From Octopus bimaculoides (taxonomy: Eukaryota), in NCBI RefSeq assembly GCF_001194135.2, contig NC_068983.1, positions 149,458,958-149,522,957 on the forward strand: a stretch of DNA of 64,000 nt. Reading direction: 5' to 3'. The translations under genes and the position numbers were made by a program. Of the stretch, positions 5,394-63,228 are shown in pieces (position 1 is the first letter of the stretch; each line of letters starts with the position of its first letter). The notes below the pieces were generated by a model. It did not search any database. It had not been told where the DNA came from and saw only the letters and a list, made by a program, of their open reading frames with translations.

Positions 5394-5435
<42 letters not shown>

Positions 5436-33818: not shown

Positions 33819-33967
33819 ATAGATGGAGAGATCCTCACTTTGCGACAAGTACTGACTGCAAAAGTACGCCGAGCAACAGAATTAAAACGAAAATTGGGCA
33901 TTACACCATTGCAGGAATTCAAACAAGATATTCAGAGTGGATTTCAACAACTCCGTGAAAGTGGAAC
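33819..33967 (+). CDS. TPD52: TPD52-family coiled-coil exon IDGEILTLRQVLTAKVRRATELKRKLGITPLQEFKQDIQSGFQQLRESGT
   Basis: Acceptor acttttag and donor AC|GTAAGT (phase 2). Clear match to the remembered D52 motif VEEEIxTLxQVLAAKE...ELKRKLG. Confidence 0.96.
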
Positions 33968-34654
33968 GTAAGTGCAAACATTTGCAAATCAATTTCTTGG
34001 TGTTCTTTCATTCTTTGCACCATTTTTGTTTTGTCAAAACAATTTTCGTTTCGTTTTTTATTATTTAAGTATTAGTTTGTCAAGAAATCTTACATTCAGT
34101 ATTTGTCATCAGTTTAGGTAATAATTTCTTCACAGTATAGTTTGTTGGTTGTGACTTTACCTTAGTTTTTTTATATGTTTCCTATCTAAATGCATTTACA
34201 AATTAGACTCTTTGTAATATTGATATAAAGGGGCATTTTTATGCTTTACCTATTTAATTTCATGAGACTCTAAATTAAGATTTGTTTAAAAAAAAGTGCA
34301 AATTTTAATCCATGTAAGCTCAAGGTTTTTAACACTGCATGTTTAAAAAAGTTGGTTTATAATTTTTTTTAATCTATTGCTTCAACTCCATTCTAATTTT
34401 TATTTGATTTTTAAGAAAGAATCTCTTTTCTGTAAGAGATCATCTAATATAACAAGAACATCTTATTCATTGTTAACAGATATTCAAACTTTGCTATTCA
34501 TTACTGCCAGTTGAAATTGTTGTTCCTGAAGTATTATATATATTTATGTAAAATATAATCTCTCCTGCCTCTTACATGTACAGTCTCAGTGTAAATAGAT
34601 CCCTTCTTTATATTCATTCATTATCTCATTTCTTACTTTCTCGATCTCAAACAG

Positions 34655-34678
34655 GGGAGGTGGTGCTTCTTCAATCTT
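34655..34678 (+). CDS. TPD52: 24-nt symmetric microexon A, (T)GGGASSI(L)
   Basis: Acceptor tttcttactttctcgatctcaaacag, donor GTAAGT, phase 2-2, no stop codon. Confidence 0.7.
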
Positions 34679-35625
34679 GTAAGTATCTCGCACTTGCTAG
34701 TAAATATTGTCTGTTATATAAATTATTTAAATTATATTAGTTTGCCTTCACTCATGTTCTTTAGTTGGTTTGAACCATTCTGGTTTCAGCTTTCTTTGCA
34801 AAGATAATTAATGACCTTGTGACCTTGTTTCAAATTATTGTCCATTACTAGAAAAAAGTCACTTCTTATTTGATGACTTCAAATTTCAGTCAAAAATCAT
34901 TTCCATTCCTACATTTGTGTGTGTGTCTTTCTGTGCAATCACATGTGTGCACATGCATGCACATGTGGTGTATAGATGCAGTCAGGGCCATGTGGTCAAG
35001 ACATTCACTTAGCAATCCTGTGTTTCTGATTTCACTTACACTACACAGGACACAAGACAAATGTCTTCTCTCATACCCTTGGATCAAACAAAGCCTCACA
35101 AGCAAAATTTGGTAGATAGAAACTGTGTGGGATGTGTGTATTTATGTATGTATGTATATATGCATGTATGTATATTGGCATCCGATGTCAGAATTAATGT
35201 ATAAACTGACTTTGTAGGATTGATCCTACATACATCAAGATCAGTTGATTGGGCCTTGTTTTCCTCTATAAGAAGATAAAATAAGGATTAGACAAAGAAC
35301 CGGGGCAATATAACTAACTCTTGAGGATGGTTTTCTATCATTATTCAATATACATCTGTATCAGTATTCATAGTAAAACTACAATAACTAAATTACATAC
35401 TAAATAGTAACCAATATTTAAGTCCATACAAATAATAATCCCACCAATCTTCCATAGTTTCTACTATAATAAGAGAGAATGAAAGCTTTATTCTAATTCT
35501 CTCCACGATTGAGTTTGATGGATAACATAACAATTATGAGTGAAATACATTATTTCATAATTCAAAGGTTAATAATAAAAGCACTACATACTCTTTATAT
35601 ATATTACCCTTACAAGCTATAATGT

Positions 35626-35712
35626 ATGTATATATATATATGTATGTATGTATGTATATATATATGTATGTATATATGTATGTATGTATATATATATATA
35701 TGTATGTATATA
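35626..35712. repeat. (TATG)n/(TA)n tract abutting the RTE tail
   Basis: Seen directly. Confidence 0.9.
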
Positions 35713-35714
35713 TC

Positions 35715-38410
35715 TCATCATCATCATTATCATTTAACGTCCACTTTCCATGCTAGCATGGGTTGGATGATTTGACTGAGGACTGGCAAGTCAGCAGGCT
35801 GCACCAGGCTCCAATCTGATCTGGCAGAGTTTCTACAGCTGGATGCCCTTCCTAACACCAACCACTCCGAGAGTGTGGTGGGTGCTTTTACGTGCCACCG
35901 GCATGACGGCCAGTCACACGGTACCGTTAACAACCTTGCACAAAAAGGTGTTTTTTACATGCCACCTGCACGGGAGCCAGTCCAGTGGCACTGGCAACGA
36001 CCTCGCTCGAATGATTTTCTAACGTGCCACCAGCACAAGTGCTAGAAGGTGACACTGGTAACAATTATGCTCAAATGGTGCTATTTACGGGCCACTAGCA
36101 TGGAAGCCAGACAGCTGCTCTGGCAATGAACACACTCAGACAGTGCTGTTAGTACTCCACTGGCGCAGGTGCCAGTCATCGAATATGGTTCAAATGCGAT
36201 TTCGATTTCACTTGCTCCAACAGGTCTTCGCAAGTCAAGTTAAGTGTCCAATGAAGGAGAGGTTGGCATGGGTGCCAGTCATCAGATTCGGTTCGATTTT
36301 GATATCAGATTTCAAATTCACTTGCCTCAACAGGTCTTCGCAGGCAGGTAAAGATACGAATAAGTGAGCTGGCTACACTTCTGGCAGAGGTCACAGCTTA
36401 TGCTCTCATTTGGCTTGCCAGGTCTTCTCATGTACTGCATATTTCCAAAGGTCCCGGTCACTAGTCATGACCTCGGTGAGGCCTAAAGTTCGAAGGTCGT
36501 GCTTCACCACCTCATCCCAGGTCTTCCTGGGCCTACCTCTTCCACAGGTTCCCTCAACTGCTAGGGTGTGGTACTTTTTCACATAGTTATCCTCATCCAT
36601 TCTTGCCACATGTCCATACCAGCGCAGTCATCTCTCTTGCACACCACAACTGATGCTTCCTAGGTCTAACTTTTCTCTCAAGGTACTTACACTCTGTCGA
36701 GTATGCACACTGACATTACACATCCATCAGAGCATACTGGCTTCGTTTCTTGCGAGCTTACGCATGTCCTCAGCAGTTACTGCCCATGTTTCACTGCCAT
36801 GTAGCATGGCTGTTCGTACACATGCGTCATACAGTCTGCCTTTTACCCTGAGTGAGAGGCTCTTTGTCACCAGCAGAGGTAAGAGCTCTCTAAACTTTGC
36901 CCAGGCTATTCTTATTCTAGCAGCTATACTTTCAGCGCACCCTTCTCCACTACACACTCGGTCATCTAAGTAGCGGAAGTTATCAACTACTTCTAGTTTT
37001 TTCTCCCTGGAGTGTGGCAAAGGTTGTTTTCTGCACATTTTCAGTGTTTATTGCTCCTGAGTATCTGCCACATACAAAAACTATCTTGCTAGTTAGCCTT
37101 CCTTTGATATTGCTGCACCTCTTATGTGTCCATATCTTACACTGGCTACATCTTATAGAGTTTCTACCTACGCCTTTTCTGCAGATCAGGCAGGACCATC
37201 TACCTGAAGGGGTTTGTGTCTTGTCTACCTTCCTACCTATTAGGACTTTGGTTTTAGCCAAATTGACTACCAGATAAGGGATCGGGGGACCTTGTCAAAG
37301 GCCTTCTCCATGTCAATGAAAGCCAGGTACAGAGGTTTATCTTTGGCTAGGTATTTCTCCTGCAGCTGTCTTACCAGAAATATAGCATCAGTGGTGCTTT
37401 TCCCTGGCATGAATCCAAACTGCATCTCGTCTAAACTAACTCTCTCCCTAATTAGTTGAGCTATGACCCTCTCCGTGACCTTCATTACCTGATTCAACAA
37501 CTTGACACCTCTGTAATTATTTGTATCTAAAGCGTCAACTTTACCTTTGTAGCAGTTGACTATGGTACTGCTACACCAGTCATTCGGTATGACTCCTTCA
37601 TGTATCACGTGGTTAACTATACGGGTGACTAGACTATAGCCGACACTGCCAGATATTTTGAGCCTCTCTGTGGTGATTCCTGATGGGCCGGGGGTTTTCC
37701 CTGTCTTCATACTCTTAATTGCTTTATCTACCAAGGTACTGTCAATTCGGATAGCTGGTCCCTCTGTTGGTTCGACATTCGGCAGACTCTCTTTCTCCCA
37801 TTCATTCTCTTTGGCATCTCCAAACCTCTCTCTTTGCAGCCTCATCTAGTGTAAGTGAACCATCATCCATGCGGATACATTTCTCTCCTACGACATCATG
37901 ATTCTCTCTCACACACTGTCTTGTAACACGAAACACCTCAAGTTTTTGGTCCTCACGGCACATAACATTGACGAATTTTTTCTTATCTGCTTCCCCTCTG
38001 GCTAAATAAACCTGTCTCCTAGCTTCTGTTTTGGCAGTCTGATACAATTCCCTGCTACCACTGTTCTTCCAGTCCTTCCAAGCCTGTTTCTTTTCTCTGA
38101 TAGCCCTGTCAACAACATTGTTCCACCACCACGTTGCCTTGGGTTGAGAGGGGACTCTGCATCATCCACAGATCTGGTCAGTGGCCTCTGGCAGGTTGTC
38201 CCATAGAAACCTCCAGTTGTCTTCCACATCATGTGATGCTATATCCCCTTCTATTTTGTCAAAGGCTTTGAGTAATACGTCTCTAAATCTCTGTCCATTC
38301 GCAGGATGTTTGAGCTTCCAGACCCTTCTCCTCCATACTGGTCGTCTTCTGGACATCCATTTAGCCCTGATCCTGAAGTCACTAACTACCAGTCTATGTT
38401 GTGGGGTACA
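35715..38410 (-). mobile_element. 5'-truncated, disabled RTE-clade LINE
   Basis: ORF2 fragments: PQHRLVVSDF, TWWW, YKGKVDALDTNNYRGVKLL, QFGFMPGKSTTDAIFLVRQLQEKY, KAFDKVP, KGRLYDACVRTAMLHGSETW, GRGRPRKTW. Then a repetitive 3'UTR and (GAT)n tail. Contains stops, frameshifts and an internal deletion. Confidence 0.95.
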
Positions 38411-39374
38411 TAAATACAATAGAACTTTTGGTATGTTTGTTTGTTAGATTATCCCTATTGCTTATAATTTCAAGTACCTTGAATGAGCATAGGTGCCATC
38501 CATTTAGAGAAAACCAATTCTAGTGTCAGACCAAGATATTTCGTACAGGATTTCTCTCATTTTTATGTCCCATATCAGTTTAGCGATGGATGTAGATTTG
38601 CTCTTGCCTGGGTCCTTGAATGAGTGGATATGATTATAAGATCCTTGTGTAAATTGAGACAATGTGGCCCCTATTTAGTGAAAGGTTTCAGTATTAGTGG
38701 TAGTTTTCAAAGTTCCAGTATGAGTGTAAATAGCCAGGAGTTCATGTAGAATACTGCATTTACAATACACTGGCTTTCTACCCTATCAGGACCTACAATG
38801 TGTGAGTGTGTGTGAGTCTTGACTTGTGTGCTGATTGCAAAGAAAATCACCAGTCATATTAACAGTGTCGTTTATTTGCAGTCTTTTGTGAAAGCATGGT
38901 AGATGGAAGAAACTGTGTGGAAGCCTGTCATGTTTATGTATGGGAGTCAGAAAGAGAGAACAACTGTTGCTAGGTTGTTTACACTCTTCATACCTTTGTA
39001 CTTTATCAAAAAGTGATGGATAGCATAGGTACCAAATTTTAAAATAAATACTGGGGTCAGTCTGTACAACTAAAACCTTTCGAGGCTGTGCCCTGGCATG
39101 ACCATAGTCCAATGACTGAAACAAGTTAAAGAATAAAAGAACACTCATACAACTAATCATGATTAATCACCTAACCCATGCCAGCATAAAAAGTAGATGT
39201 GAAACAATTATGATGATAAAGTGGAGGAAGATGTATGTGTTGTATATGTATCTGTGTGCTTGTTTACATTTGCACTTCTCCAAAAATTACTGAGCAGTGA
39301 CAACGTTGTCATTTCCCCTGTCAACAAGTCATCTGCTGGTTTGTGCCTCCAATGACACGTGGAATAAAAGATTT

Positions 39375-39740
39375 TTATTTGCAAAACAGGTAATATTTAG
39401 CAACAGGAAGGGCTTTCATCTATAAAAAAACCATGTTTATACTCAATAACACATGGCCTGACGTATTTTTCAGAAGAATGGAAATAAATGACACCACTTG
39501 TATGACAGTGACATTTGTTTACAACTATCATGTGATGTCGAGTCAAAAACACACATACATACATGCATGCACACACACACACACAACTGGCTTCTTCAGT
39601 TTCTGTCTACCAAATCCACTCACAGGCTCTGGTCAGACCAAGGCTATAGTAGAAGGCACTTGCCCAAAGTATTACTGTGAAACTGAACCTGAAGTCACAT
39701 GGTTGAGAATTGAACTTCTTAAAAGCACAGCCATGTCTGT
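39375..39740 (-). mobile_element. SINE type F
   Basis: Reverse complement of the type F head and body. Confidence 0.7.
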
Positions 39741-39955
39741 GCCCGCTTTGATGAACTCCCCAGTAATGTAACGATAGTAGTTTAGTAAAAGTCACATATC
39801 ATTAAATTATGTCTATTTGAGGCATAGTTCTTGCAAGCAGATGTTCTTTATCTGACTTGTTTTTCAAGTAAAGAGTCTCTTATTCCACACAGCTTCAAAT
39901 GCACAAAGTGATTGGACATTTTGTTGACAGCAGAAGCTGACAACACCACCACCTG

Positions 39956-39957
<2 letters not shown>

Positions 39958-39989
<32 letters not shown>
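39958..39989. repeat. (GT)n microsatellite
   Basis: Seen directly. Confidence 0.95.
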
Positions 39990-39990
<1 letters not shown>

Positions 39991-42079
39991 TTTATACATA
40001 TGCACTCGCAATTTGTGTTGTTGTTTTCTTTATAGTTTTTTTATAGTCTGTGTCTTATTTCATTTGATATTTATTGTATATTTGTGATAATTTAATAATA
40101 CTATATAACTTTTGTTATTGTTGTTGATTTCCTATGTGAATCACTTGTTTGTACCATTTAACACAAATTCACTTGTATTACTTAACGTAGTTGTAGTCTT
40201 TGTTTTCTGTCATTACAACACTGTTGGTCAACTTGTTTAAATAAATGCTTATTGCATATTTATTTGCATTCATATATTATATTCATATCTGAAACTTCCA
40301 TTTAATTCTGCATTTACAAAAGGCTGCCTAATTCGACTTTTTTTTTTTTTTTTTCGACATTTCATATTTCCATCATATGTCAGTAGTTTTCATTTACATC
40401 TGCTGACATTGTTATAGAATATAGTGAATCAATTACTATATCTATTACAAAACTTCCTTCCTCTAAAGATATATTGATGTACTACAATCAGTTAAAACAA
40501 TACTCAAAATCCTTTTCATCAATTTACAGTAATTAACTTTGATTTGTTGATGCTGATACATCCTATTCAGTCTGTAAATGAATATTATTACTGGTACCAT
40601 AAAGTCAAGGTACATACCTAGCAAACTGACCCAGCTTCATATTCCAGTTGTATCTGTTTCGCTTCAGTTAGTTTTTGTAAAGATATTAGCAACAATTTAT
40701 TCCAACTTTACCACACACATGTGCACACACCAACCTGAGGCCAATTGTCCATGTAAGAAGTCAATATTGCTCCATTCAATGACAATAAAAATCTTTATGT
40801 AGCAATTATATTTTTCCTGTTCAATTTATCTTCATTTAGAAAATGTGTCCTATAAGTTGGATTATAAATTTTAGATGTTTATCTTTTCCAAAAATATCAA
40901 AAGAAAATATTTCACCAAGTTGTAATTTTTCTGGTGATGATTTATGGCCAAAGATTTGGATGCTTACCTCAACCCCTAGTGCTATTTTGTTTCATTATTA
41001 GAAGCACTTCACTCTCAAATAGCTCTACAAATAGACTACATAGCTCTAATATGTATGACTAACTACTACTCACCACTATTTATTTGTAATGCTCATCTCA
41101 TATCCTTATCTAAGCACTTTTGAGGACTAAATTCCTAGCATTGATGGCAGAGCACTCCAAAAATTATGAACTTATATTCAATGAATAATATATTTGAGAA
41201 AACTATTATTCTCAATAATTTTCATTGTTAAACACATTTGCTGAAGCAGCTATGGATGTAATAATTCAGAACAATTTTAGAAACTTCAGTCTTACATCAT
41301 TATAGCTTTAGGATTGATGTTTTACTGAATAGAACCCTTAAAAATCAGGTTTTGTAATGCTTAATAAAAAGTTTTCTTCTGCTATGTTCATCAAAAACAT
41401 TTTTTAAGAGCATATTTTTGTCAGGTATTCTTCCTGATACTTAATGTATTAAGAAATATCTTCTCATGTTTACTCCTCAAGACAATTTTATCTGTGTGAA
41501 GATATAAAACCTACACTTCTTACTATACCCTATTATTGAAAGTCTGGTGTTTTATCCAAATACCTGATACTGCTTCACCTTTTAATTACCTGACATAAAG
41601 CAGTTAGTGCTAAGAGTATATGTGATATGAATCTCAAGAAGAGCATTTGTATTCTCCTGTATAAGAGGACATAAAATGGTTACAAGTAGTGCTCCTTCTC
41701 TTCCACCTCGGAAAAAAATATGTTTATTCACTAACAGACTCAGGCTTATTAAAATTGACAGAATTTTATGACTTATTTTCCTTGTATTAATGACATAAAA
41801 AAAATCATTAAGCATTTGATGAGTTAAATTTACCAATGTCATATTCAATTACTGCTAATTCTTTTCAGATAGTACTTTCTTATTAAGACATGATTTATCT
41901 CCTTGTCCTTCGGGGCTTTTCTTAATATCCTTTTGTAAAGTTCTCCATATACCTTTCAAATGGTTACTAGTTTGTCAGGTTTCCTTTGTTTATTTCACTA
42001 ATTGCTATTGCAATACTATCACACTAATTATATCTCAATCATTACTATTAAATCCAGAGGTACATTTGTTTTCAGTAGT

Positions 42080-42405
42080 NNNNNNNNNNNNNNNNNNNNN
42101 NNNNNNNNNNNNNNNNNNNNNNNNNNNNNNNNNNNNNNNNNNNNNNNNNNNNNNNNNNNNNNNNNNNNNNNNNNNNNNNNNNNNNNNNNNNNNNNNNNNN
42201 NNNNNNNNNNNNNNNNNNNNNNNNNNNNNNNNNNNNNNNNNNNNNNNNNNNNNNNNNNNNNNNNNNNNNNNNNNNNNNNNNNNNNNNNNNNNNNNNNNNN
42301 NNNNNNNNNNNNNNNNNNNNNNNNNNNNNNNNNNNNNNNNNNNNNNNNNNNNNNNNNNNNNNNNNNNNNNNNNNNNNNNNNNNNNNNNNNNNNNNNNNNN
42401 NNNNN
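42080..42405. other. Assembly gap (326 N) in the intron between microexons A and B
   Basis: N run. Confidence 1.
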
Positions 42406-42530
42406 AACCGGATGGCAACACCAGGCTCCAATCTAATTTGGCAGAGTTTCTACAGCTGGATGCCCTTCCTAACGCCAACCACTCAGAGAGTGTAGTGGGT
42501 GCTTTTACGTGTCACCCGCACGAAAACGGC
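42406..42530 (-). mobile_element. RTE 3'-tail copy emerging from the gap
   Basis: ggctccaatctaatttggcagagtttctacagctggatgcccttcctaacgcc. Confidence 0.8.
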
Positions 42531-42828
42531 CACCAAAAAGATTTTATAACATTTTTCTAACATTTTTCTGACATAATTTAAATATATACTTTAACCATGT
42601 AACACAAGCCTTCTGTAGTTTTTTCACTCTTATTATCTTTTATACATCCAACCACGTGCTTTCACATACCAACTTTCTCACCTATATATATATGTATATA
42701 TACACATAATGAAAGTACAATTTTTGGTAGTATGTTGAAGGTATTTCACATAATGATGTGTTTATGTTTTGTCTGATTTTTACTCTTATGGTTTGTTATA
42801 TTTGCTATCCTAATCCGTTTTAATTCAG

Positions 42829-42852
42829 GGCGGGTGCTTCTTCAAGTGATTT
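42829..42852 (+). CDS. TPD52: 24-nt symmetric microexon B, AGASSSD(L)
   Basis: Acceptor ctaatccgttttaattcag with a CTAAT branch-like motif, donor GTGAGT, phase 2-2. Splicing to 49864 gives SSSDL-YQKT, like QSDL-YKKT of vertebrate TPD52L2. Confidence 0.72.
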
Positions 42853-43360
42853 GTGAGTACTATGGAACAGTGTTGATCTTGCATGTTATGCTCTGTAGTG
42901 CATTTATTTTATAACTCATCAGCTAGTCAGTATAAACAATTTTTTAAAATACATTCAGTGCACATAAAATATTTCCTTTAAAAAATGTCTACAATGCAGC
43001 TATTTCTGCTAGCTTAATAAATAGCTTTCTAGTTACATATGAATTTATGTTTACTGAATTGTCTATAGATTTGGTAAAATTTGTGGATTTTGTATTGCTA
43101 TTATTATAAGAGTATTATTATTATTGTTAATATGAAAACATTATGATTGTAATTATAAAAAATATTATTAATCAGTAATATGGCAGATTAATTCAGTAAC
43201 TGTATCTTTCTCACTCAAAAATAGGCTTTGAGCCTTCTCAAATTATTATTGCTTTTCATCCTTTCGGAGTCAGATATAAATATCAGTCAAGTACTGGGGT
43301 CAATGTAATCGACTTCCCCCTCCCTTCAAAAACTGCTGGCCTTGTGCCAAAATTTGAAGC

Positions 43361-43409
<49 letters not shown>

Positions 43410-47860: not shown

Positions 47861-47884
47861 ATATCAGAAAACCTGTAAACAACT
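47861..47884 (+). CDS. TPD52: Candidate 24-nt microexon C, YQKTCKQ(L); donor uncertain
   Basis: Acceptor ttcttgtgactatattgcag. It starts A TAT CAG AAA ACC versus A TAC CAG AAG ACA at 49864. The in-frame donor GTCTGT is weak, and the competing donor GTAAAC at 47875 would give a 14-nt exon. Confidence 0.45.
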
Positions 47885-48433: not shown

Positions 48434-48795
48434 TCAGGTCATCCCATAAGTTCTGTCCAAATTTTGAATAAAGAAAACAAGTGATCAAATGTTATATTTA
48501 ATTGAAATTTAATCGTCAATGTACTTTCCCTGGTTATCTAGGACTTCCTTCCATCTATTTACAAACTTTTTAATCCCATCAATGTAAAACTCTTTTGGTT
48601 TCAAAGCAAAGCACTCTGAAATGTCAGTTTTGACCTCCTCCTGGCTTGTGATATGTAATGAAGTATCTATGTGAAATATACTGGATTGATTGAAATGGTT
48701 GACAGTGGATTGAGGAATATCAGAGTAGGAATACTTAAGTTTTTGGAAGTTGATGTTATGATAAATATAAGAAAGTGGCCAAAACTTATGCTGGG
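48434..48795 (-). mobile_element. Mariner (Tc1/mariner) remnant, transposase C-terminus
   Basis: SQEEVKTDISECFALKPKEFYIDGIKKFVNRWKEVLDNQGKYIDD*, plus TA followed by the TIR-like tcaggtcatcccataagttctgtcc at 48432. Confidence 0.85.
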
Positions 48796-49863
48796 GTTTG
48801 TTCATCACCATTTGGTAGAGCTGGTGTACTTAATTGGTAAAAAAAAAAATAGCCAACTCGGGCTCAGAGGTGATCAAAAGTATTGTAGGTCCATTTTTTT
48901 TTTTTTTTACCCTAAGGGTTAATTAGTTCTGACTGTCAATGATAGATATAAATTTTTAGAGATTTCAATCAAAGGAAATATTTTGCATGTTTCAACATAT
49001 TATATATTAGGTTTCATTTATTGTGGCTGTAGTTTTTGTCTTTATTTTCATTAGAAAATGTTTCAGCTTAATAGATCTTCAGCTATCTTTTCTGTTAGAG
49101 GCAATCTTTCACTGTTCTTGATGTTGACCATAAATTGCTTCATTCTACAAACAGAATCTACAGAATTTCAGCGTCCCATTTGATTCATTTCTCTTTTAAT
49201 CAATAAGTGTTGCTTTTTATTAACGTTTATTAGTTCCAGATTCCAACACTGCTCTGCATGACTATAGGGCTTTACTTAAAATAGCCACTTAGTCTGGTGT
49301 AACTCTAATATCCTTACTGTCAAATCCCATAATGTTCACTTCTACATTTCTTTGCAGATTTATGGCTCTGCATGAAATTTGTTTCTTTAACATTTTTGTT
49401 CTGCATGATAATTTCCTCCCAGTTTCAGCTGTTGCTGCTTATTCAGTTTGCATGCACATTTATGGTATTTTACTTGTTCTGAGAGTAACAATAATGAGAT
49501 ATGCTAAGTTTTTGCAGAAATCCTACAATAACTGAACTACTTTTGTTACTCTGACAACTTCAACAATGTATATTTTCTTAATGCATCTTTGGCATTCAGG
49601 TTTGTATTCTCAGAAAACAAAGGAATTTATTTTGTGCTTGTGTCACTTAAATTTTCTTCTAAATAATACATCCAATTTCAGTAACTCTTTAATCGCAATA
49701 TACATAATGATTTCTCCTGAAATGATCATTAATATTTTTTTTTTTTTTTTTTTTCATTTCTTTAAAGCATGTTTTCATGTCTGTAGTTTGTTGCATCGAG
49801 TCATTTTATGAATTATTTTCCTCATTTTGGTATATATAAATATGTTGGGGTTTTTTTCTATAG

Positions 49864-49965
49864 ATACCAGAAGACATCTGCTGCCATGAAGACTGCTTCT
49901 GAGAAAACTACATCTGCCATTTCAGTGCTTGGTGCTTCAGTAAGCAAAAAATTTGATGAAATGAG
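49864..49965 (+). CDS. TPD52: TPD52-family exon YQKTSAAMKTASEKTTSAISVLGASVSKKFDEMR
   Basis: Acceptor ttttttctatag, donor AG|GTAAC, phase 2-2. Matches the remembered YKKT...GQKxSAA...GS.I.KK..DM pattern. Confidence 0.95.
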
Positions 49966-51189
49966 GTAACATTTGTTTCTACAATACATAACAATTATTA
50001 AAAAGTATCTCCATATACAATGAATTGTATTGTACACCAGTTTCTAAATTGTTTTGCTAAGAATAGAAACAAGAAATAAATGTTCTGTTGTCTATGTTGG
50101 ATAATCTAATAGAATAAATGCTTAACGGACATTAAATGATGATGATGTTGGATATGTTATATATGTTGGATATGTGTAACAGAAGATTATAAAAGATATT
50201 GTTTGTCTGTGATCTTTGCATATGATGTATGTTTCATGTTTTTTTTCTGATTTATGCCTGTGTGTGAAGGCATGTTAAATTAAAAGTGAAAGAAAAAAAT
50301 TATATCATTTTCTTCAGATTAGAATGTTTTAAATTTCATTGTGACAAGGGCAGAGTTTAATCTTTTGTATTAATATTTAATGAGATATTAAGTCCTTTCA
50401 CTTATCTAAGGACTAGTCCTTAACTCTGGTTTCTGTACTACTAAATAATAAGAGCCAAACCTACTCCAAGAAAGGACACCAATTCATATTAAATATTCCG
50501 TTTATAGCAAGGTGGGACACACATAAGAAAGAAGAAAGCAAAGGACCACTGATGAGGTCACAGAAGTGTGATGAAAGAACTCTGGCCGAAATAGGATTAA
50601 TGTAATGTAATGTAATATAATGCTGAAGCAAATTAACACCAAATATACAGTGCGTGTGTTTTTATTGGTTAAACTGGCAATATGACCGTCCCCAAGTACA
50701 ACAACATCATATTAAATAAATTTCTCACAAATGCTGGTCCTTTTTTTAAAAAAAGGTAGGCAAATTGAAGCTCATGCTCAAAATAATCTGTTGAGAGTCA
50801 TTGAAAATATATGCAATGGATTTGAAATTTTGTCTCTACTAGAATATATGAACCTTAATAACACCAAACATTGATAGAAGTTGTTAATGGTATTTCAGCT
50901 TATTGTTTTATCACTCTAAGCTAGTAACTTGGATTAATGCTTATTAACTTCCCAGCTAAAGAATTAATTTGAATCTTGTCATCAATGTTACTCTTTAATG
51001 AACTTGCTCTAAGTAAGTATAGCTTGTTACTGAAAGGACTTGTTTCCTTGTGTTGTAGTGCTTATTCAAATCTAGCACCATCCCATAAGTTCCATCATGT
51101 CGTTTGACACACTATATGACTACAAACACCATCTTATGTAACTGAAAATTTTAAAAATATTCTCTTGCAAAAATTGGTTGAGCACCATT

Positions 51190-51345
51190 GCACACGCTGT
51201 AAAGTGGTTGGCATTAGGAAGGACATCCAGTCAAAGAAACCATGCTAAATCAGATTGGAGTTTAGTGCAGCACCCTGGCTTGCCAGCTCTAGTCAAATCA
51301 TCCAACCCATGCCAGCATGGACAACAGACGTTAAATAATGATGAT
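51190..51345 (+). mobile_element. RTE 3'-tail copy
   Basis: gtggttggcattaggaaggacatccag...gacgttaaataatgatgat. Confidence 0.75.
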
Positions 51346-51407
51346 CAGTTGATTTTGTTTTTGTCTGATTGATCTGCTGTATTTCCTGTTGAATTTTATT
51401 ATTTCAG

Positions 51408-51468
51408 AAATTCTCAGACATTCAAGACAGTGGAAGAACGAGTGGAGAATGCTTACACTAATGTAAAG
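51408..51468 (+). CDS. TPD52: TPD52-family exon (R)NSQTFKTVEERVENAYTNVK
   Basis: Acceptor ttttattatttcag, donor AAG|GTGAGT. Matches the D52 motif NSPTFKSFEEKVEN. Confidence 0.95.
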
Positions 51469-52196: not shown

Positions 52197-52332
52197 TTTT
52201 TTTTGTTTTGTTTTTCTCCTATTTTCCTTGCTTGAGCTGCTTATCAAAATTAGAATTAAGCCTATTATTGGTGTATTTGTAAGTTTGTTTACTCTGTCCT
52301 GAAATTTTACTAACCATGCATATTCTGTTTAG

Positions 52333-52368
52333 ACTTCAAAGTCAATTGAGAATTTAAAAGATAAATTG
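52333..52368 (+). CDS. TPD52: 36-nt symmetric cassette exon TSKSIENLKDKL
   Basis: Perfect TACTAAC at 52308-52314, acceptor tattctgtttag, donor TTG|GTGAGT, phase 0-0. The peptide resembles D52 KSFEEKVENLKSKV. Confidence 0.75.
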
Positions 52369-53586: not shown

Positions 53587-53945
53587 GTGGCTGTGTAGTG
53601 TGAAGTTTTCTTCCTAACCACATAGTTTCAGGTTCAGTCCCACTGTGTGGCACCTTTGGCAAGTCTTCTATAGCCTTGGGTCTACCAAAGCCTTGTGAGT
53701 GGATTTGGTAGATGGAAACTGAAAGAAGCCCTTTGTGTGTGTGTTTGTTCCTTACCAGTGCTGGTGTGTTTGTGCCCCCATAACTTAGCAGTTTGGCAAA
53801 GGAAGTTAATAGAATAAATACCAGGATTAAAAAGATAAAAATAAGTACTGGGGTCAATTCATTCTACTAAATATTATTCAAAGCAATGCCCCAGCATGGC
53901 TACAGTTTAATGACTAAACCAATTAAAAAAAAAAAAAAAGATGAA
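53587..53945 (+). mobile_element. SINE type A
   Basis: Head, body and tail homologous to the other type A copies. Confidence 0.8.
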
Positions 53946-55250
53946 AGAAATAACTTCTTAAACTTTGCTAAAGGCAACCTCTCAAGTAAAGCAGGTTATC
54001 CAAACTATAATCAGTACAGTGCAGTGTGCAAAGAAGTCGGGAAGATAATCTATCTGATGCTAGCAACATAGAAATATTTATCCTGTTCCATCACAAATAC
54101 TGGTTCTAGGTACTAAATATAAGAACACTGCCAAACAGTATAATTCCTACAGAGAACCATTTATTGCATTTTATTTTGATAGGGTATGCATGATGTTTAA
54201 AGAGTTTTGTCAAACAGTCATAAATTGTGATTTGTGAAGTCAGCATGATGTGTAATTTGTCCTGGTTGAACTGAGACATACAACTTTGTGCCCTACTTGG
54301 TAACACAAAAAAAAAAAACTGCAGATGATATCAATTTATTATTTATTATTTGGTTACATAATACTACTCACTTTCTTTACCTCAACATCTATTCACTTAT
54401 TTGTTTTTACCTCAGTAAATAAATATATAAGCTAATAGCATATTCTGCTATTGTAGAGTGCTAAATAAAATAGCCTTTAGTATTTACAAGGCATTGCCAT
54501 ATTATCTCAAATAAAAATATATAAACAAGCAAACGGTTAAGGATCTTTGCTTATTACCTCTGTGCCATTTACTCAAATCCTTAGAATCTTCCTTTTGTGA
54601 TACACGCCACATCACATGACTCAGCCACATGTGGTTAGAGTAATTATATTCCTATTAATTTTTATTATCCATGCTGTCACAAAAAGTATTTTTGATTTTG
54701 AGAAAGAGAAAACTTGGCCTTACATGTTAAATATATTGTTGAATACCAGATACAAGTTAGTTTTAAACCAAATTGTAAATTTTATAAATTAGAATTTTGC
54801 AATTACTTGAGTAATAAGTGAAATTTTACAGTTTCTGTTTTATGTAGCTCAAAAAATTTATAATGGTCCTTTACTCTTGAAGCAAAACTATATTATTTAT
54901 CTCAAGCGCTAGTGTAGTCAGTTACTTGACCTTTCATAATCAGAGCTATTTATTAACAGGTATTAGTCTTCTCTTAACTGGGAATGAAAAAATATCAGAC
55001 TTAGATTTAAAAGTTTATTTGGGGGCAAGACATTTGAAAAATTTACTTTGAGATACTTTTTTAACTTATGTGGTCCTTTGTGTTGATAAATATTTGGTTG
55101 AAATAAAGTTAAATTGTTTAATGTAAAGAGTTATGATATTGAAATATAATGCATAGACTGAGCAAAGAATATATAAAACAAAAGTAGTGTAAATAAAGAG
55201 TAGTACTAAAAAATAACAGACCAGAAAAACCTAAAGTATCATAACTTAAA

Positions 55251-55495
55251 GGAGGCACATAGCTTAGTGATCAGGGTGTTGGACTCCTGATTGTAAGACT
55301 GTGGTTTCAATTCTTAGACTGGGCAATGCATTATGTTCTTGTACAAAACACTTTATTTCACATTGCTCCAGTCCACTCAGCTGGCAAAAATGAGTAATCC
55401 TGCAATGGACTGGTGTCCCATCCAGGAAGGAGCATACATGCCAGAGAAACCAAGAAACTGGCCTTATGCTCCTTACAGAGTAATATGGACTAACC
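55251..55495 (+). mobile_element. tRNA-derived SINE with a V-domain-like core
   Basis: Type C-like head followed by cctgcaatggactggtgtcccatccagg, which resembles the remembered V-SINE domain. Confidence 0.6.
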
Positions 55496-57826
55496 ATAAC
55501 CATTATAACTTAGATGGTGTTAATTTATATTGAATATATTTTGTCAATCATGAATTTTATACCTGTGAGGTGTAGGTAAAAATCTTATTGGCAGCTTGAG
55601 ATACTTTCAGTTTTATAATGTAATTCTAGGTTTATGAGCTGGAGGATTGTGATAAAAATAAATTTAATATAAAGGAATCAAGAAGTTAGGGAAGAATCAA
55701 TAGTAACATTTTTAGAACAGTTCAACATACCTGAACATATGAGTTACACAAAGCTTATTGCAGTCTTACTCTAGTTAATCAATATACCTCAGGTAGAAGT
55801 GTTGAAGGTGATACTTAGCAGTTTTGTCTTTTATGAGTTGTGCATTTTATGTCATTGAGTATGTCTAACATTGGTGTTACTAAGAGAAGGAATGGTGTGT
55901 TTGACAGATATTATATTTTATGTAGGTGGTTAATAAAAGAGTTTTAGTTGTGTACGTGAATGGAAATGGTGTTAACTCTGATGTCATTTGCATATGAAAG
56001 GTTATGTGGGATGGGGCGGGGCATGTAAGAAGGTGGTGTAGGTATGAGTAGAAGTGAGACTGGATATTTGCATTCCATTTATTACTGATTGTACATGTGT
56101 TGTAATTTACATAGGCTTGTTAACCTGAGAAATACTTCAACAGTCAGTGTTTTGTGTTATTCTTTAAGCGGGTGTTAGTATTTTACATATGACTAGATTG
56201 CTTGCCCCACAAAAATTTGGAGCTTAATTTGTCTAAACAAGCCACTCCCTACTGTCACAAAATGTAAAATCTAATGTTTTTTTTATAGCCGTAGTCACTC
56301 AGTAAGAAGGCCAAAATTGCATATAGTGAGATACTTTAACAATCTTTCTAATATACCATCTTTTAATACAAATCAGGAAAAAAAATAGGTTTCATAAGGA
56401 ATTTATAGAACCAATTACTAAGTTAACTGGTATTTTTTGTTATTTTGTCTTTATTCACTCAATCTATCTGTTCATTCTGCAAGATTGTTGTAACTAATCT
56501 TTTGCCTGTTATTTCTAATAACAAGACACAAAATTCACTATTAAAATGCTTTTCTGTTGTATCAGTTTTTTTGTTTTGTTTTGTTTTGTTTTTTGTGTGT
56601 GTGTGTGTTTAGTGTTTGTTTGCTTACATATTCATGCATGAAATTATGTTGTTTAATATAATTCTTTTTTACAACACTGCCATCTCTGTTCTTGTTCTAC
56701 AATACTGTCATCACTACTCTTTTGATTTAAGATGCCTTGGTAGCAAAAGGGTCAGCAGTTTACATCCATCATGCTACGCCAATATCAAAAACATTTAACT
56801 TTTTGTAGCCCTGTCCACAGTCAGTTTCTTTCTTTATTTAATTAATTTGAGTAGAGGAACAATGCATTTGACTATGGCAATGCTCAAACTGCAAATAGCT
56901 ACAATGACTATTATATTAGCTTGAATGTTGGACTCAGATCTTTATTCCCTTTGCTAGACCCTTGTTAAAAGCTAGTGTTAACACACAGCTGCCTTGTTCT
57001 GTGAAAGCTGAAATAAATCCAGCATATTTTATCTACCATACGGAGACTGTCATTATACACAAATGTCTGTGTAAAAGATCCTGTATAAACTGAGTTCAAG
57101 CAACAGGATCCTCTTGCAACACTGTAATTCTTTATTGGTCCATACTTATCTGTAGTCTCTCAGTAGTTCATTCCCCACCCTGTCTATATTTCAATGAATT
57201 TTGATGTTGTAGAAGAAAATGAAACAGTTTTACTCCATGGCCCTTCTTATCTCTAACAATCACCACTTCCATATTGGTGTACATGCCTGTTTGCCTATCT
57301 ATCTCTACCTCTACATATTAAATTGAAATTTTAACTATCATATGCTTTGCAACAGGTGTTTTCTACCCTTTTCCTTGTTTAAAGACTTATAATACACACA
57401 TACACACACTCTTATGATTCTAAACTTTCTACACTGATAAAATATGCATTTCTGCACTCATTTAATTACTGCAGCTAGGTTGATGATGGAGGGGCAGTGC
57501 TAGAGAGCTGATGGATGATGGAAAAGACTTGAGGAGGAAATTAGGTGAAGGCTTCAGTTTCACTGAGATGTACACATCTTAAGTATTGCATATCACCAGT
57601 CATCCTGGTCCTTAATCATCTGTTCCATGAGGTTCAAGGTCCTGAGATCAGCCTTCACTGCTTTATCTCATGTCTTCATGGACCTCCCTCTTCCACAAGC
57701 TTCATCAAAGCTGTGGCATCCAGCCTTAGCTACTCCTAATTTTCCAATTTCATTGTGAAACATGGAAACGGGAAACTTTTAAAATCTCATATAGAATTGT
57801 TTTAAATTATGTGATTCCATCTTCAG

Positions 57827-57868
57827 GGTACCACTGAGGTGAAGCCATCAGAAGAGTTTTCAGCAAGT
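57827..57868 (+). CDS. TPD52: 42-nt symmetric cassette exon GTTEVKPSEEFSAS
   Basis: Acceptor gattccatcttcag, donor AGT|GTGAGT, phase 0-0, open frame. Confidence 0.68.
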
Positions 57869-59429
57869 GTGAGTGAAATATTTTTTTAAAAAATGAAAAA
57901 TCCCAAACCTAACCACACTTGTTTTCTGTTAGCTGTGTTACTACACCTTTTTCTGCTTCTCCTTTCTCAGCTGGTTCTGTTCAATAAAATAAGTATCAGT
58001 CAGTATATTATTAAGTCAATATAATTGACAGTTTCCTCCTGCACGAGTTCCTAACCTTGTGCCTACATACCCACACATCCTCATTTTATATATTAATCAA
58101 TATGCTTGATAATGAGATTTTAGTACATTACAACTTACCTTTTTATTTAATATGTAGACAAACTTTAATCTGTCAATTCTGTCTTCTTATACTATTTTAC
58201 ATCCATATTTCTAACTTAGCACGACTAAAATAGCTTTTGTAATCTTGCTTACTATTAGGGCTTTTTTTTTTTTTAGTCTTCCTACCTCTCTTCCTTAGAC
58301 ATTAAAATAGGTATAAAGCCAGTTTATCAGCCAGCCAGACTGATTCAAACAGGGGTTTGAGCCATTGCCAAGGGATACTATATAACTGTTATAGTAGTAG
58401 AAAGAATCAAACTTCAAATGACATGGTCTGCAACTTTAACCTCACTGCTACTATCCTTTTTAATCCACGTATAACTTCTTTATAGAATACCTCATTTAAT
58501 ATTTTTCATTAAAAAAAAAAAATGCTTACTTTACTTATGTACAAGAAAGTTCAAACAGTACTATTTTTATATATTGCTTTTTCTATTCAAGATGTCAGAA
58601 AATTATTACTGTTGTCATATTTGCACTCACTTTGTGCTAGTCTTTTTTATATATCTCTTTACATTTGTTAATTAAACAGTATTTTTTTCTTCTTCTTCGG
58701 AAGTGTGTGTTTATGCTCATATTCATGAAGGTGATTGTGCTTATATTCATTGTGTAAATGTGTTTGAAAATATTGAAAACTGAAATAGCTTCTTTCTGTT
58801 TTTAATAGTTAATCAGCAGATATCATGATTATACCTCATGATTATGATGAAAATAAACAAGCTTATTGTGTGATGTAATTATTGCTCACATTCTATTGTT
58901 CTGTTTTCTAACGGAATTAGATGCACAGTCGATGACCTGGTGGTAATGGAATTATCTGAATGGCATGAATTTCTTGTCATTACAATGACCATCTAATCTC
59001 TGATAAATAACAACATTATTTGTACTACAAAAAACCTCCAAACAACATAGGTTAGCTGAGAGGATGTAAGACCTGTTCAGAGTGACATATATCAAAAAAT
59101 ACCTCGGACCTACTACATATGCGTATGCACACTTACTAGTGATGGCCCCTCCATGTGGTTGCTTGGCTTGCTAAAATTAACAGCCAAATTTCCCTCAAGT
59201 CAACTTCATCAATGTAAAAAAAAAAGGACACATTGGATAATGTAGGCATATATACACTATGCCTGAGAAAAAAATAGGTTTATATTGGCTGGAACATTCT
59301 TGAAGATCTGTCACCCCAGTCAGGACTGAACTAGAGCTAAGCAATACACAAACACACACATTAGCATTCACATGTACAGTAATACTCTATACATTTCTTT
59401 CACTAGTACTCACATACTTATCATCATCA

Positions 59430-59850
59430 TCATCATCATTATTTAATGTCCACTGTTCCATGCTTGTGTAAGTTGGATGGAATTTTTTAGGCAGATTTTC
59501 TACAACCAGATGCTCTTCCTGTCACCAACCTTTACCTGTTTGCAAGTAAGGTAATATTCTCCCAGACCAGACATGTTTACACAGAAGATTGGAAACAAAG
59601 ACACTGATTGCATGACTTTCATTTACAACTATCACGTAAAGTCAAGACAAGGAGACAATAATGTGCATGCACGCACACACACACACTATGGTTTTTTTTT
59701 TTTTTTTCATTTTCTCTCTACTAAATCCACTTACAAGGCTTTCCCAGCCTCAAACTATAGTAGAAGACACTTGCCCAAGGTGCCACACAATGGGACTGAA
59801 CTTGAGACCATGTGGTTGGGAAGTAAGCTTCTCACCACATAGCTATGCCT
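59430..59850 (-). mobile_element. SINE type F
   Basis: Runs from the (CAT)n tail at 59.43 kb to the head ...accacatagctatgcct on the + strand. Confidence 0.8.
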
Positions 59851-60049
59851 GTGTGTTATAGTTTATATAAAAGCAATAGGTTGTGTTAATATATTGTTAG
59901 ATTACTAGTTAATAAGACTCAAGTTCAAATTTATGATAAGTGTTTTGTTACGTGTTAGGACAGCATAGTTAATTCTATAGAACTAAGTTCACATAACCAG
60001 GGAATTGGCACTTATTTCTTCACTGTCACCAAAACAGATTTATCTCTCA

Positions 60050-61450
60050 TCTGTGTTATGCTAAACATCCACTGCCGTTCAATGAGCATGGGTTGTGGAG
60101 CACAGCTTGGCAACAAGGCCACACTTCAGTCTTTGGCAGACCACTATGAGTGTATACTCTCTGATTCCAAGCAGATGTGTGCAGTTTTTCAATGGCACTT
60201 TGCCAGATTGTTCACAAGAAGTGATAAAATGGAAATGATGGGCTTCAATCTTACCTCAGTGACCTGCTGTTGCTATTGGCTAAACATGCAGATTAGTATG
60301 TAAAAAAAAAAAAAAATCAGCTGTTGAAGTAGCAGACATGTTGAACAACTAACTGTATGATAGATAAATTGCCAAGACTGGACAGTCTGTTGTATGGACT
60401 TATTATTACATGTCTGACTTCTTTGTTGTCTTGGCAGCTGTCTATTGCAATTGGTAGTAGATTGGAAGCATTCCAAATTTTGTGAACTGGTGATGCTGTT
60501 GAGGAAGAATCTGAACAAGAGAGAATAGTGGAGACCTTCAAACCCATAACTCTGCTCATCATAAAGTAAAAGATTTTAGTTTAAGATGCTTGTCAGTAAC
60601 AGTTTAAGCCAGAGATGCAGACTTGTGCAACCCCCAGTTGATCAATCCACAATAATTTGTACTTCATGAAATAAAATATAATGTTAGCCGCAGTAGATCT
60701 GGCTTTGGTAAGTTTCTAATCAATTTAGATTAGTGTGAAGCAGATGATAGGATCAACCCTCCTACCTGGCAGTTTTCCTAAGCAGAGATGGTTTTGATCT
60801 CATTTACAGAGGCTGAATCACTACAATGTGCAGTGTCATCTGTGCTGTTGTCAAATTTAAATAGTCACCTACCAGAAGTGTTTCGTATCACATGCACACT
60901 TTGCCAAGGCTGCCTTCTCTCATCCCTTCAGTATATTTTACCTCCAGTGCCAAAGTATGTTGAAGATGTTGAGGGCAACCTGCTTGAACTGGGATATGAA
61001 AGACCTATTTTTGGATGTGCAGACAACATGAGATGGGAATTGAGGTGGTCAATAGCTGTAGACATCATGGTGCTGACACACTGGGTTTAGTCATGGTCAG
61101 TACCATTGTGGAGGAGCAGTCGGAGGCATTGGGAGCATGCATTACCCAGGGCAAGGAAAAAACTTCTGTTACTGGTTGAAGACCTTAACTTGCCAGTGCA
61201 TTTACTTGTTGAAAATAAATTCTACAAGCATAGCCATCTTGAAACCACCAGCAACTGTGCTTGTCTGAGATACATACAGAGTGGAAAGATTATCTGGCAC
61301 ACATTCGCTCAGTGTTTATGCATTGCTGATTTGTGGGTTATGTTGAACAGCTGTTATCAACTGAGTCTACCATGAAAATCAGCCCCTCATCTTCCTTTGG
61401 CGGGAGGGGTAGTATTCCTTGGCCGCATTTCCATGGCAAAGGGAGTTGTG
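60050..61450 (+). mobile_element. Decayed L1/Tx1-like LINE ORF2 remnant
   Basis: QMCAVFQWHFARLF, KLPRLDSLLY (like SPGLDGLPY), FKPITLL, CQGCLLSSLQYIL (like RQGCPLSPLLY) and GCADN (like YADD), in the expected order. Confidence 0.7.
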
Positions 61451-61729
61451 TAATGGGATATGGTTGGAAGTGTTTTTCTTCTCATACGAAACCCTAATCA
61501 ACTACAAGTAGCACTTTAAGGAAAAGGTAAGAGCAGAAAGGGAGGTTGTATGAAAGGTCCAAGAGAGTGACAAAATTAGCATAACTAAATGGACCCACAT
61601 GAACTCTGCCACCTTGTATGTAGTTTCATAAGAACTGAAAGAAAGCACTTGTTTTAATGTGTCAAGCTAATCCCAAATTGCATGTGAGGTGCCTCAAATT
61701 ACCCTAAGAGTGTAAAAGCGCTCATTACA

Positions 61730-61850
61730 TTCTTGGAGTGGTTGCCATTAGGAAGGGCATCCAGCTGTAGAAGACCATACCAAATTAGACTGGAGTCTGG
61801 TGCAGCCTTCCAATATGCCAGTATGGACAATGGACGTTAAATGATGATGG
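61730..61850 (+). mobile_element. RTE 3'-tail copy
   Basis: ggagtggttgccattaggaagggcatccagctgtag...ggacgttaaatgatgat. Confidence 0.75.
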
Positions 61851-62129
61851 TTCTCTCCTCACTCATATTTTAAGAATCTTTCTTGTTCCTATTATGTTAA
61901 TCTGTACTGTTATTACTATTCCTTATTATTTGATTATTAATGTACTTTTTTGAATGAAGTAAATACTCTACTGCTTCTTTTCTCTTATGTTACTTTGTAT
62001 TTTGCCTTTATATTATCCCTTTCTTGGGCTCTTGTGAACAATAAAAAAATTGTTGTTGGACTACAGTTTGGTATTAAAATAATTGTAACTTAGCTTCAAG
62101 TTTTATTGATGTTATTTCATTCATAATAG

Positions 62130-62530
62130 GCGCAGGCATGGCTCTGTGGTAAGAAGCTTGCTTCCCAACCACATAGTTCTGGGTTCAGTCCCCCTGCGTG
62201 GCACCTTGGGCAAGTGTCTTCTACTATAGCCTCAGGCCGACCAAAGCCTTGTGAGTGGATTTGGTAGATGGAAGTTGAAAGCAGCCTGTCATATATATGT
62301 ATATGTATGTATATTTTATGTGAGTATGTGTTTGTCCTCCACCATCACCTGACAACCAATGTTGGTGTGTTTACCTTCCTGTAACCTAGCAGTTCAGCAA
62401 AAGAGATTGATAAAATAAGTACTAGGCTTACAAAGAATACGTCTTGGGGTCGACTGCTTCGACTAAAAACCCTTTAAGGTGGTGCTCCAGCATGACCACA
62501 GTCAGGATGACTTAAACATGTAAAAGAATA
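62130..62530 (+). mobile_element. SINE type A
   Basis: Full-length copy with tail ggtggtgctccagcatgaccacagtc. Confidence 0.85.
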
Positions 62531-62684
62531 ATAATTTAATAGATTGTGGGACATAAAAATACAGTACTAGTGTAAAAGTGGTGAAAAAATAATGGAACAC
62601 ACACAAAAGCAACAGAACCAGTTTATAAGTGATGCTGTTGCACAAGTATAGATGTGTGTGTGTGTGTGAATATTTATACACTGC

Positions 62685-63065
62685 AGACATGGCTGTGTGG
62701 TATAAAGTTTGCTTCCAACCACATGCTTCTAGGTTTAGTCCTAATGCATAACACCGTGCAAGTGGATTTGGTAGGTGCAAACTGAAAGAAACCCATTGCA
62801 TATATGCATATGTATGTGTGTGTTACAGTTTCTTTGCTTTGACATTGCATGCTAGTAGTAAACTAGTGTCACCATAATGCAAGTGGTGTCCTTAATTTCC
62901 AATATTCTGTTTATGCTGGTCATGGGTAAATATTACCTTACTTGGAGACAGGTGAGGGTTGGTGATAGGAAGAGCATTGAGCCATAGAAAATCCACCTCA
63001 ATAAACTCTGTCCAACTGATTCAAGCATGGAAAAGTAGATGTTGAAATGTTGATGAGGATGATGT
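62685..63065 (+). mobile_element. SINE type F ending about 40 bp upstream of the last TPD52 exon
   Basis: Head gacatggctgtgtggta ... tail gcatggaaaagtagatgttgaaatgttgatgaggatgat. Confidence 0.8.
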
Positions 63066-63105
63066 ATATATGTATATAATACAATCTTTCATTTTCCATT
63101 TTCAG

Positions 63106-63228
63106 TCTCGAGTGAAAGGTAGCAAATCCAACCAGAGCCTCAATGAAAGTTTCCAGGCATCCAGTGAACCAAGTACTCCCCGATCAGAGGACAATCCTCC
63201 TCTGCCCGAAGAAAAGGTGCCCCTGTAG
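63106..63228 (+). CDS. TPD52: TPD52-family terminal coding exon SRVKGSKSNQ...PEEKVPL*
   Basis: Acceptor ctttcattttccattttcag, phase 0, 40 codons then TAG at 63226-63228. It begins SRV, like SKV in vertebrate D52 last exons. The U-rich 3'UTR follows. Confidence 0.9.
   Translation, partial: SRVKGSKSNQSLNESFQASSEPSTPRSEDNPPLPEEKVPL

Follow-up and report, generated by a model that had tools for sequence, protein, structure and literature searches.

Proteins of the TPD52 family use amphipathic helices (AHs), placed after a dimerising coiled coil, to capture transport vesicles that are small and highly curved. Short inserts described in their vertebrate members include, first, ins2, a 20-aa amphipathic module that makes up most of AH2 in TPD54 (TPD52L2, residues 106-125) and contributes to membrane binding (PMC9270247); and second, a neural serine-rich exon that precedes ins3, the 14-3-3-binding insert, in TPD52 and TPD54 (PMC12896813). 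Here we analyse the TPD52 gene of Octopus bimaculoides in a stretch of 64,000 nt of the forward strand (RefSeq assembly GCF_001194135.2, contig NC_068983.1, positions 149,458,958 to 149,522,957; hereafter the window, with positions counted from its first letter). A previous reading of this DNA, made from the letters and a list of open reading frames (ORFs) and referred to as the sequence-only reading, had proposed five short exons at two junctions of the gene. We find it very probable that four of these are real cassette exons that preserve the frame and lie at two conserved intron positions, and that the fifth is something else.

The locus corresponds to the 3' portion of TPD52 in Octopus bimaculoides, in line with the gene identity given by the sequence-only reading. 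In the chromosome-level assembly the gene extends over ~150 kb, and the window, which is AT-rich (33.6% G+C) and contains two N gaps (19676-20072 and 42080-42405), covers its 3' 60 kb. Constitutive exons were located by tblastn with vertebrate D52-family proteins, and by direct reading of exon borders. The 321-aa product scores 88.8 bits against Pfam TPD52 (PF04201; E = 3.5e-25), above the gathering score of 25, and the matches retrieved in a protein search were TPD52 isoforms from O. vulgaris, O. sinensis and O. bimaculoides. All O. bimaculoides-specific residues (DTVASRD, RESGT, SNGDTTNE and GTTEVKPSEEFSAS) are encoded in the window, and the proteins assembled from its exons are the exact sequences filed under XP_0147807xx accessions.

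Cassette exons in transcripts and gene models

The cassette exons occupy two junctions, and these, together with their phases, were read from the exon borders exactly as previously proposed. Slot 1 is the phase-2 junction after the coiled coil. On its upstream side lies the constitutive exon at 33819..33967 (this and all other exons are on the plus strand), which encodes the coiled coil and AH1 (IDGEILTLRQVL...QQLRESG+AC) and ends in phase 2 at AC|GTAAGT; on its downstream side lies the constitutive exon E3 at 49864..49965 (YQKTSAAMKTASEKTTSAISVLGASVSKKFDEM+AG), which starts with the third base of a codon and encodes an amphipathic helix that resembles the motif called ALPS (for amphipathic lipid packing sensor). 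Slot 2 is the phase-0 junction before the last exon, flanked upstream by the constitutive exon E4 at 51408..51468 ((R)NSQTFKTVEERVENAYTNVK), the equivalent of AH4, which ends in phase 0 at AAG|GTGAGT, and downstream by the last coding exon at 63106..63228 (SRVKGSKS...EEKVPL; stop codon TAG at 63226-63228).

Slot 1 hosts two cassette microexons of 24 nt, namely, mA at 34655..34678 (GGGASSI(L); acceptor ...caaacAG, donor GTAAGT) and mB at 42829..42852 (AGASSSD(L); donor GTGAGT). Slot 2 hosts the 36-nt mC at 52333..52368 (TSKSIENLKDKL) and the 42-nt mD at 57827..57868 (GTTEVKPSEEFSAS), both with the donor GTGAGT. All four have canonical AG/GT borders and lengths divisible by 3, and both the included and the skipped forms are in frame. 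By size, mA and mB fall within the strict microexon range of 3-27 nt, whereas mC and mD fit only the looser limit of up to 51 nt. As the sequence-only reading had remarked, each of these exons is absent in frame from its list of ORFs of at least 40 aa. Within mD, an internal GT (57827-57838, GAG|GTGAAG) has a good donor score and, if used as a donor, would leave a 12-nt in-frame microexon (GTTE), a form that is in no annotated isoform.

Direct transcript support comes from a contig, L001, assembled in Logan from SRR32601320 (2585 nt), which is colinear with the window at 99.9-100% identity. Its junctions, 33967|34655-34678|42829-42852|49864 and 51468|52333-52368|63106, match at 100% identity, such that this RNA includes mA, mB and mC and skips mD. 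The RefSeq isoform X5 (307 aa, A+B+C) is identical to it.

The remaining O. bimaculoides RefSeq isoforms distribute the four exons in further combinations. X1 (XP_014780766.1, 321 aa) carries all of them; X2 (313 aa) has B+C+D, X3 (313 aa) A+C+D, X4 (309 aa) A+B+D and X6 (305 aa) C+D; and the older X8 (293 aa) and X9 (279 aa) have D and no cassette exon, respectively. Hence mA is found in X1, X3, X4 and X5, mB in X1, X2, X4 and X5, and mD in X1-X4, X6 and the old X8, mD being present also in the O. vulgaris and O. sinensis models. These two species contribute the combinations A, C, A+C and B+C. Altogether, 12 of the 16 possible four-exon combinations are present among the gene models annotated in Octopus, and the RefSeq and UniProt records include the form without cassettes (279 aa) and every single-exon form except mB alone. 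The proposal that this gene is diversified by short frame-preserving cassettes used in combination at both junctions is therefore borne out. The annotation of O. vulgaris, which relied on PacBio Iso-Seq with PASA and has a mean of 1.36 transcripts per gene (PMC10700109), lists at least 16 coding isoforms of TPD52, an unusual number for that annotation.

The same records bear on novelty. The O. bimaculoides (XP_014780766.1 to XP_014780781.1), O. sinensis (XP_036356986.1 and others) and O. vulgaris (CAI9719548-63) entries describe the same gene, the same four exons and the same junctions, and the RefSeq isoforms of O. bimaculoides match the proteins built from the window residue for residue. The four exons have been known from public gene models for years, and the claim that they were hidden does not hold, since RefSeq X1-X6, O. 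sinensis and the Iso-Seq-based O. vulgaris models already carry them. Our literature search found no paper on TPD52 microexons in cephalopods, nor any that cites the SRA runs of the contigs, and TPD52 goes unmentioned in the accessible part of a multi-species tissue-splicing preprint that covers O. bimaculoides. The value of the locus as a discovery is small, because the four real exons have long been public and the sole new element, the fifth exon, is unsupported.

Beyond Octopus, squid-like transcripts have, in the same slots, exons of 24 nt and 48 nt and one that encodes TSKSIENLKDKL without change, again in combinations. Their conservation differs from exon to exon. First, mA and mB share an exact 13-mer, GGTGCTTCTTCAA, at an offset of 3 nt, and are paralogues that arose by tandem duplication; the squid-like slot-1 exon is single (GAACACTGCCACAACAACTGATTT, NTATTTDL), with only its ends in common with mB. 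Second, octopus and squid-like transcripts agree in every amino acid of mC and in 29 of its 36 nt, and the exon has homologues in Patella, Pomacea, Physella, Aplysia, Lymnaea, Pecten and oysters, that is, in limpets, caenogastropods, heterobranchs, scallops and oysters. Third, mD is fast-evolving: it varies at 3 of 14 residues within Octopus (GATEVKSSEEISAS in O. vulgaris), and its squid-like homologue, the 48-nt GATGYFLGTGNSPTEA (transcripts L002 and L003), has only the first ~10 nt in common with it. The squid peptides NTATTTDL and GATGYF... are both absent from the window by tblastn. Judging by these alignments, mC is found across molluscs and is not lineage-specific, whereas mA, mB and mD look cephalopod-specific; the earlier suggestion of lineage-specific peptides fails for mC. 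We also considered an additional constraint on mC at the RNA level and dropped it, given that 6 of 12 third positions are conserved between octopus and squid-like sequences, compared with 39-62% in constitutive exons.

Position of the inserts in the protein

To place the inserts we took the helix boundaries of human TPD54 (PMC9270247), with the numbering confirmed by a 20-residue check. Slot 1 corresponds to A105|Y106 of the human protein, the start of ins2 (106-125), and slot 2 to K175|S176, inside AH4 (163-180) and five residues from the end of that helix. The octopus product has the architecture of the family, namely, a coiled coil followed by amphipathic helices that include an ALPS-like motif: its amphipathic helices, with hydrophobic moments of 0.43-0.52, align to AH1-AH4 of human TPD54. 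In an AlphaFold2 model, helices span residues 29-71, with a predicted local distance difference test (pLDDT) score above 90, and residues 75-92, and further helices are of low confidence. The model renders mA, mB and mD as coil and mC as a separate short helix, at a pLDDT below 50 over these regions, which is what one expects of segments that fold on membranes. For mC the hydrophobic moment is high, at 0.596, but the helix is out of register with AH4. The Gly/Ala/Ser stretches of mA and mB, which are free of charge, add 8 or 16 residues.

These positions suggest a mechanism. Inclusion of mA or mB would make the flexible tether from AH1 to the ALPS-like helix longer; that of mC would add a short, charged amphipathic helix after AH4; and that of mD would add an acidic, Ser/Thr-rich disordered stretch after AH4. 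Independent inclusion or skipping of these exons may then alter the spacing and the number of the membrane-binding modules downstream of the dimerising coiled coil, and the adaptor's engagement of partner proteins, or of small vesicles with high curvature, could be tuned in this way. In human TPD54, a mutation in AH2 that adds charge (L113D) lowers liposome binding ~3-fold (PMC9270247). Since the octopus exons fall between or inside the helices by which the family captures vesicles, the isoforms represent a natural series relating linker length and additional helices to vesicle binding.

The proposed fifth exon and alternative readings

A third 24-nt exon in slot 1 is absent from every record. 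The best candidate for it, and the only non-random one among 28, is 47861..47884 (YQKTCKQ+L), which has the acceptor tattgcAG and a weak donor, GTCTGT. It is in none of the more than 40 annotated Octopus isoforms, Iso-Seq-based ones included, nor in the squid-like transcripts, nor in the RefSeq records that match the window; and the 329-aa and 287-aa products that would carry it are absent from a collection of 15 billion proteins. Of the five short exons once proposed, then, the four of 24, 24, 36 and 42 nt stand on transcript or protein evidence and the third of 24 nt is unsupported. The estimate of 32 isoforms of up to 329 aa is not supported either: the longest protein on record has 321 aa and four exons.

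The start of the candidate is nevertheless not random sequence. Over the initial 12 nt (ATATCAGAAAAC), 10 of 12 positions agree with the beginning of E3 (ATACCAGAAGAC), and AG-N followed by Tyr-Gln-Lys-Thr codons is a pattern with just two occurrences on the two strands of the 64 kb, this one and the acceptor of the real E3, with an expectation of 0.01. We take this E3- or ins2-like start to be a real homology signal. When the 60-nt ancestral frame is followed from 47861, it runs into a stop codon beyond codon 8. The element is probably a decayed remnant of an ancestral 60-nt ins2-type exon, and in all likelihood the third 24-nt exon that had been proposed is no exon.

The alternative that 47861-47884 (YQKTCKQL) is a live fifth exon, rare or cell-type-specific and missed by annotation pipelines, is in our judgement unlikely. 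The candidate has AG/GT borders, an open frame and the right phase, the non-random start just described, and a TGC 5 nt upstream of its acceptor; and microexons are often missed by short-read pipelines. Against this, its donor scores ~0, compared with 4.6-12.6 for the real exons, and it ranks 36th of 451 candidates; it is missing from all the isoforms and transcripts listed above; and its ancestral frame has decayed. Conservation offers little leverage. A genomic contig from another Octopus species (L004, Logan SRR11869391) aligns to window positions 48674-50299, including the introns flanking 49864-49965, at 87.9% identity, and ends ~800 nt short of the candidate; and a protein search with the intronic ORFs adjoining 47861, aimed at orthologous contigs, returned no match. 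With an intron background of ~88% within the genus, there is little power to show conservation of a 24-nt element above background.

Quite improbable, too, is the complete scenario of the sequence-only reading, that is, five hidden microexons giving 32 isoforms (279-329 aa) in a lineage-specific neural programme driven by SRRM3/4-type factors with an enhancer of microexons (eMIC) domain. Parts of it are sound, as four of the exons are real and combinatorial, two are within the strict microexon range at 24 nt, the donors of all four are strong (GTRAGT), and a neural serine-rich exon reported in vertebrate TPD52 and TPD54 provides a precedent (PMC12896813). However, the exons are in RefSeq and hence not hidden; the fifth is without support, with its 329-aa and 287-aa products absent and the candidate count at chance; the 36-nt exon is found across molluscs; and no paper was found that links TPD52 to cephalopod microexons. 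UGC motifs upstream of the acceptors are as frequent as in the background: a TGC is present in the 40 nt upstream of the mB (-26) and mC (-16) acceptors and not of those of mA or mD, two of four exons, compared with 41.7% of 1502 intronic AG sites.

How little the splice signals discriminate is apparent from their frequency. Open, in-phase AG-N-GT candidates number 28 at 24 nt, 12 at 36 nt and 25 at 42 nt, compared with 23.3 ± 4.8, 18.2 ± 4.0 and 16.3 ± 3.6, respectively, in dinucleotide shuffles, and with a crude position weight matrix splice score the real exons rank only 5th-12th among ~400-450 in-phase candidates per intron. Splice dinucleotides, a length divisible by 3 and an open phase cannot, by themselves, separate real exons from chance; the four exons are singled out because of transcript and protein evidence, not because of their signals. 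A decoy at 52237-52278, 55 nt upstream of mC, is a 42-nt, in-phase, open segment encoding LLIKIRIKPIIGVF; it combines a good polypyrimidine tract (TCTCCTATTTTCCTTGCTTGAG) with a perfect GTAAGT donor, and no record contains it. If this was the 42-nt exon of the sequence-only reading, then that exon is unsupported.

That the short exons are themselves chance AG...GT matches or gene-prediction artefacts is scarcely credible despite these counts and ranks, because the junctions of mA, mB and mC are exact in L001, a de novo contig, the peptides are conserved in three Octopus species and that of mC across molluscs, and independent squid-like transcripts carry homologous exons; for mA, mB and mC this explanation is already refuted, for mD it is very unlikely, and to other candidates, 52237-52278 among them, it continues to apply.

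Four genuine cassette exons at two conserved positions, with 47861-47884 as a remnant, is the explanation we prefer with high confidence, and the following points weigh against it. First, mD is without a directly assembled O. bimaculoides contig, and rests on the RefSeq, O. vulgaris and O. sinensis models and on its squid homologue. Second, Gnomon may build isoforms combinatorially from short reads, so that some of the full-length combinations may not exist as single molecules. Third, the absence of the fifth exon from annotation is no proof that it is never spliced. Fourth, the functional part is extrapolated from the biochemistry of human TPD54 and from a low-confidence model.

The remaining parts of the gene complete the description. 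The first coding exon of the MAATKPS... isoforms lies at 3493..3763, with its ATG at 3493, and ends with one base of a codon before the donor GTAAGC. L001 aligns to 2614-3764 at 99.9% identity, which takes the 5' untranslated region (UTR) back to at least 2614; this UTR, of at least 879 nt, is contiguous with the first coding exon, and the 3' UTR extends beyond the end of the window (63229-64000). A separate Logan ORF (P0140) continues through the first-exon donor at 3764, as in unspliced or intron-retaining RNA. A further constitutive exon at 33086..33219 (GDNYYDPLSPP...EELSK), supported by its borders and by L001, ends in phase 0. The other annotated first exons (MSVPSKDDE..., AMNDEEEYMLLF, MMAESIGLSS..., MHHEQVKK and MSKRFESL) have no tblastn match in the window and must therefore be located upstream of it; such N-terminal variants raise the number of isoforms above the earlier estimate.

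Several features of the introns concern the assembly and its repeats. The 326-N gap at 42080..42405 lies in the 8.15-kb intron between mA and mB. On the right, the gap is flanked (42406-42524) by a truncated copy of a ~255-nt dispersed repeat; this copy begins near position 73 of the element, so that the gap interrupts a repeat. In L001, 34678 is spliced straight to 42829 across this gap; therefore, the reading frame is independent of it, and the order and strand of both flanks are right. The annotated isoforms of the three Octopus species contain nothing between mA and mB. The other N gap, 19676-20072, sits within the 29-kb first intron. The repeat family, which resembles short interspersed elements and measures ~255 nt (up to ~370 nt), has at least nine copies or fragments in the window that are 81-93% identical: 9438-9692, 30494-30748, 35717-35971, 42406-42524 and 5419-5495, and, on the minus strand, 20986-21234, 51203-51345, 61712-61808 and 10844-10928. 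The slot-1 intron also holds, on the minus strand at 36400-38420, a fragmented retroelement in which the ORF 37267-37845 matches the reverse transcriptase domain RVT_1 (44 bits) and the neighbouring ORF 36983-37261 a PHD/C1-like zinc finger; several chance exon candidates fall within it.

Comparison with described inserts and microexons

One counterpart of the octopus inserts is a pan-molluscan cassette, (T/S)SRSIExLKxxL, in the TPD52/D54-like genes of Patella, Pomacea, Physella, Aplysia, Lymnaea, Pecten, Ostrea and Crassostrea/Magallana, of which mC is the cephalopod orthologue. It lies at the same junction, is identical to mC at 7-9 of 12 residues, and is alternative in all cases. The versions differ in detail: in bivalves the cassette has 14 aa, with an extra GL, GM or KF at its end, and in cephalopods K replaces R at position 3.

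With ins2, the likeness is one of position rather than of sequence. The vertebrate insert and the 60-nt ins2-type exons of molluscs (YQKTNEKLHDINDKITHSTA, in one to three tandem copies) occupy the same intron position and phase as slot 1, and they resemble the octopus slot-1 exons in lying immediately before YQKT/YKKT and in having been tandemly duplicated. However, mA and mB are 8-aa Gly/Ala/Ser linkers without sequence similarity to ins2 (YQKTNEKL.../YVKTSEKL...). By tblastn, the window contains no intact ins2-type exon, and only the remnant at 47861 begins YQKT. Other molluscs have, besides one to three tandem ins2-type exons, unrelated slot-1 inserts of 21-24 nt, such as YKWTTNV in Gigantopelta aegis (P0092) and PFAPLYTR in Crassostrea virginica (P0113). 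We interpret slot 1, from these sequences, as a hotspot, a site of recurrent gain of short exons. It is tempting to go further and to propose that coleoids replaced the ancestral 60-nt ins2 with duplicated Gly/Ser-rich 24-nt microexons, and that the 47861-47884 remnant is still spliced under eMIC control in restricted, for instance neural, cells; taken together, we regard this as quite unlikely.

The vertebrate ins3 and its serine-rich exon are likewise short alternative inserts in the same family, but at another junction, the equivalent of 49965|51408. In the 1.4-kb octopus intron at that position, tblastn and splice scoring gave no candidate for an ins3 exon or a 14-3-3 motif, and the octopus inserts are without RSxSxP. 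Compared with the neural microexons governed by the eMIC factors SRRM3/4, mA and mB are alike in their 24-nt size, preservation of the frame and strong 5' splice sites, in residing in a vesicle-trafficking protein, and in adjoining structured modules; unlike those microexons, mC and mD exceed the 27-nt limit. UGC at the acceptors is at background frequency. From molluscs to vertebrates, then, alternative inserts have been accommodated at a single intron position, with turnover of the sequence that is inserted there.

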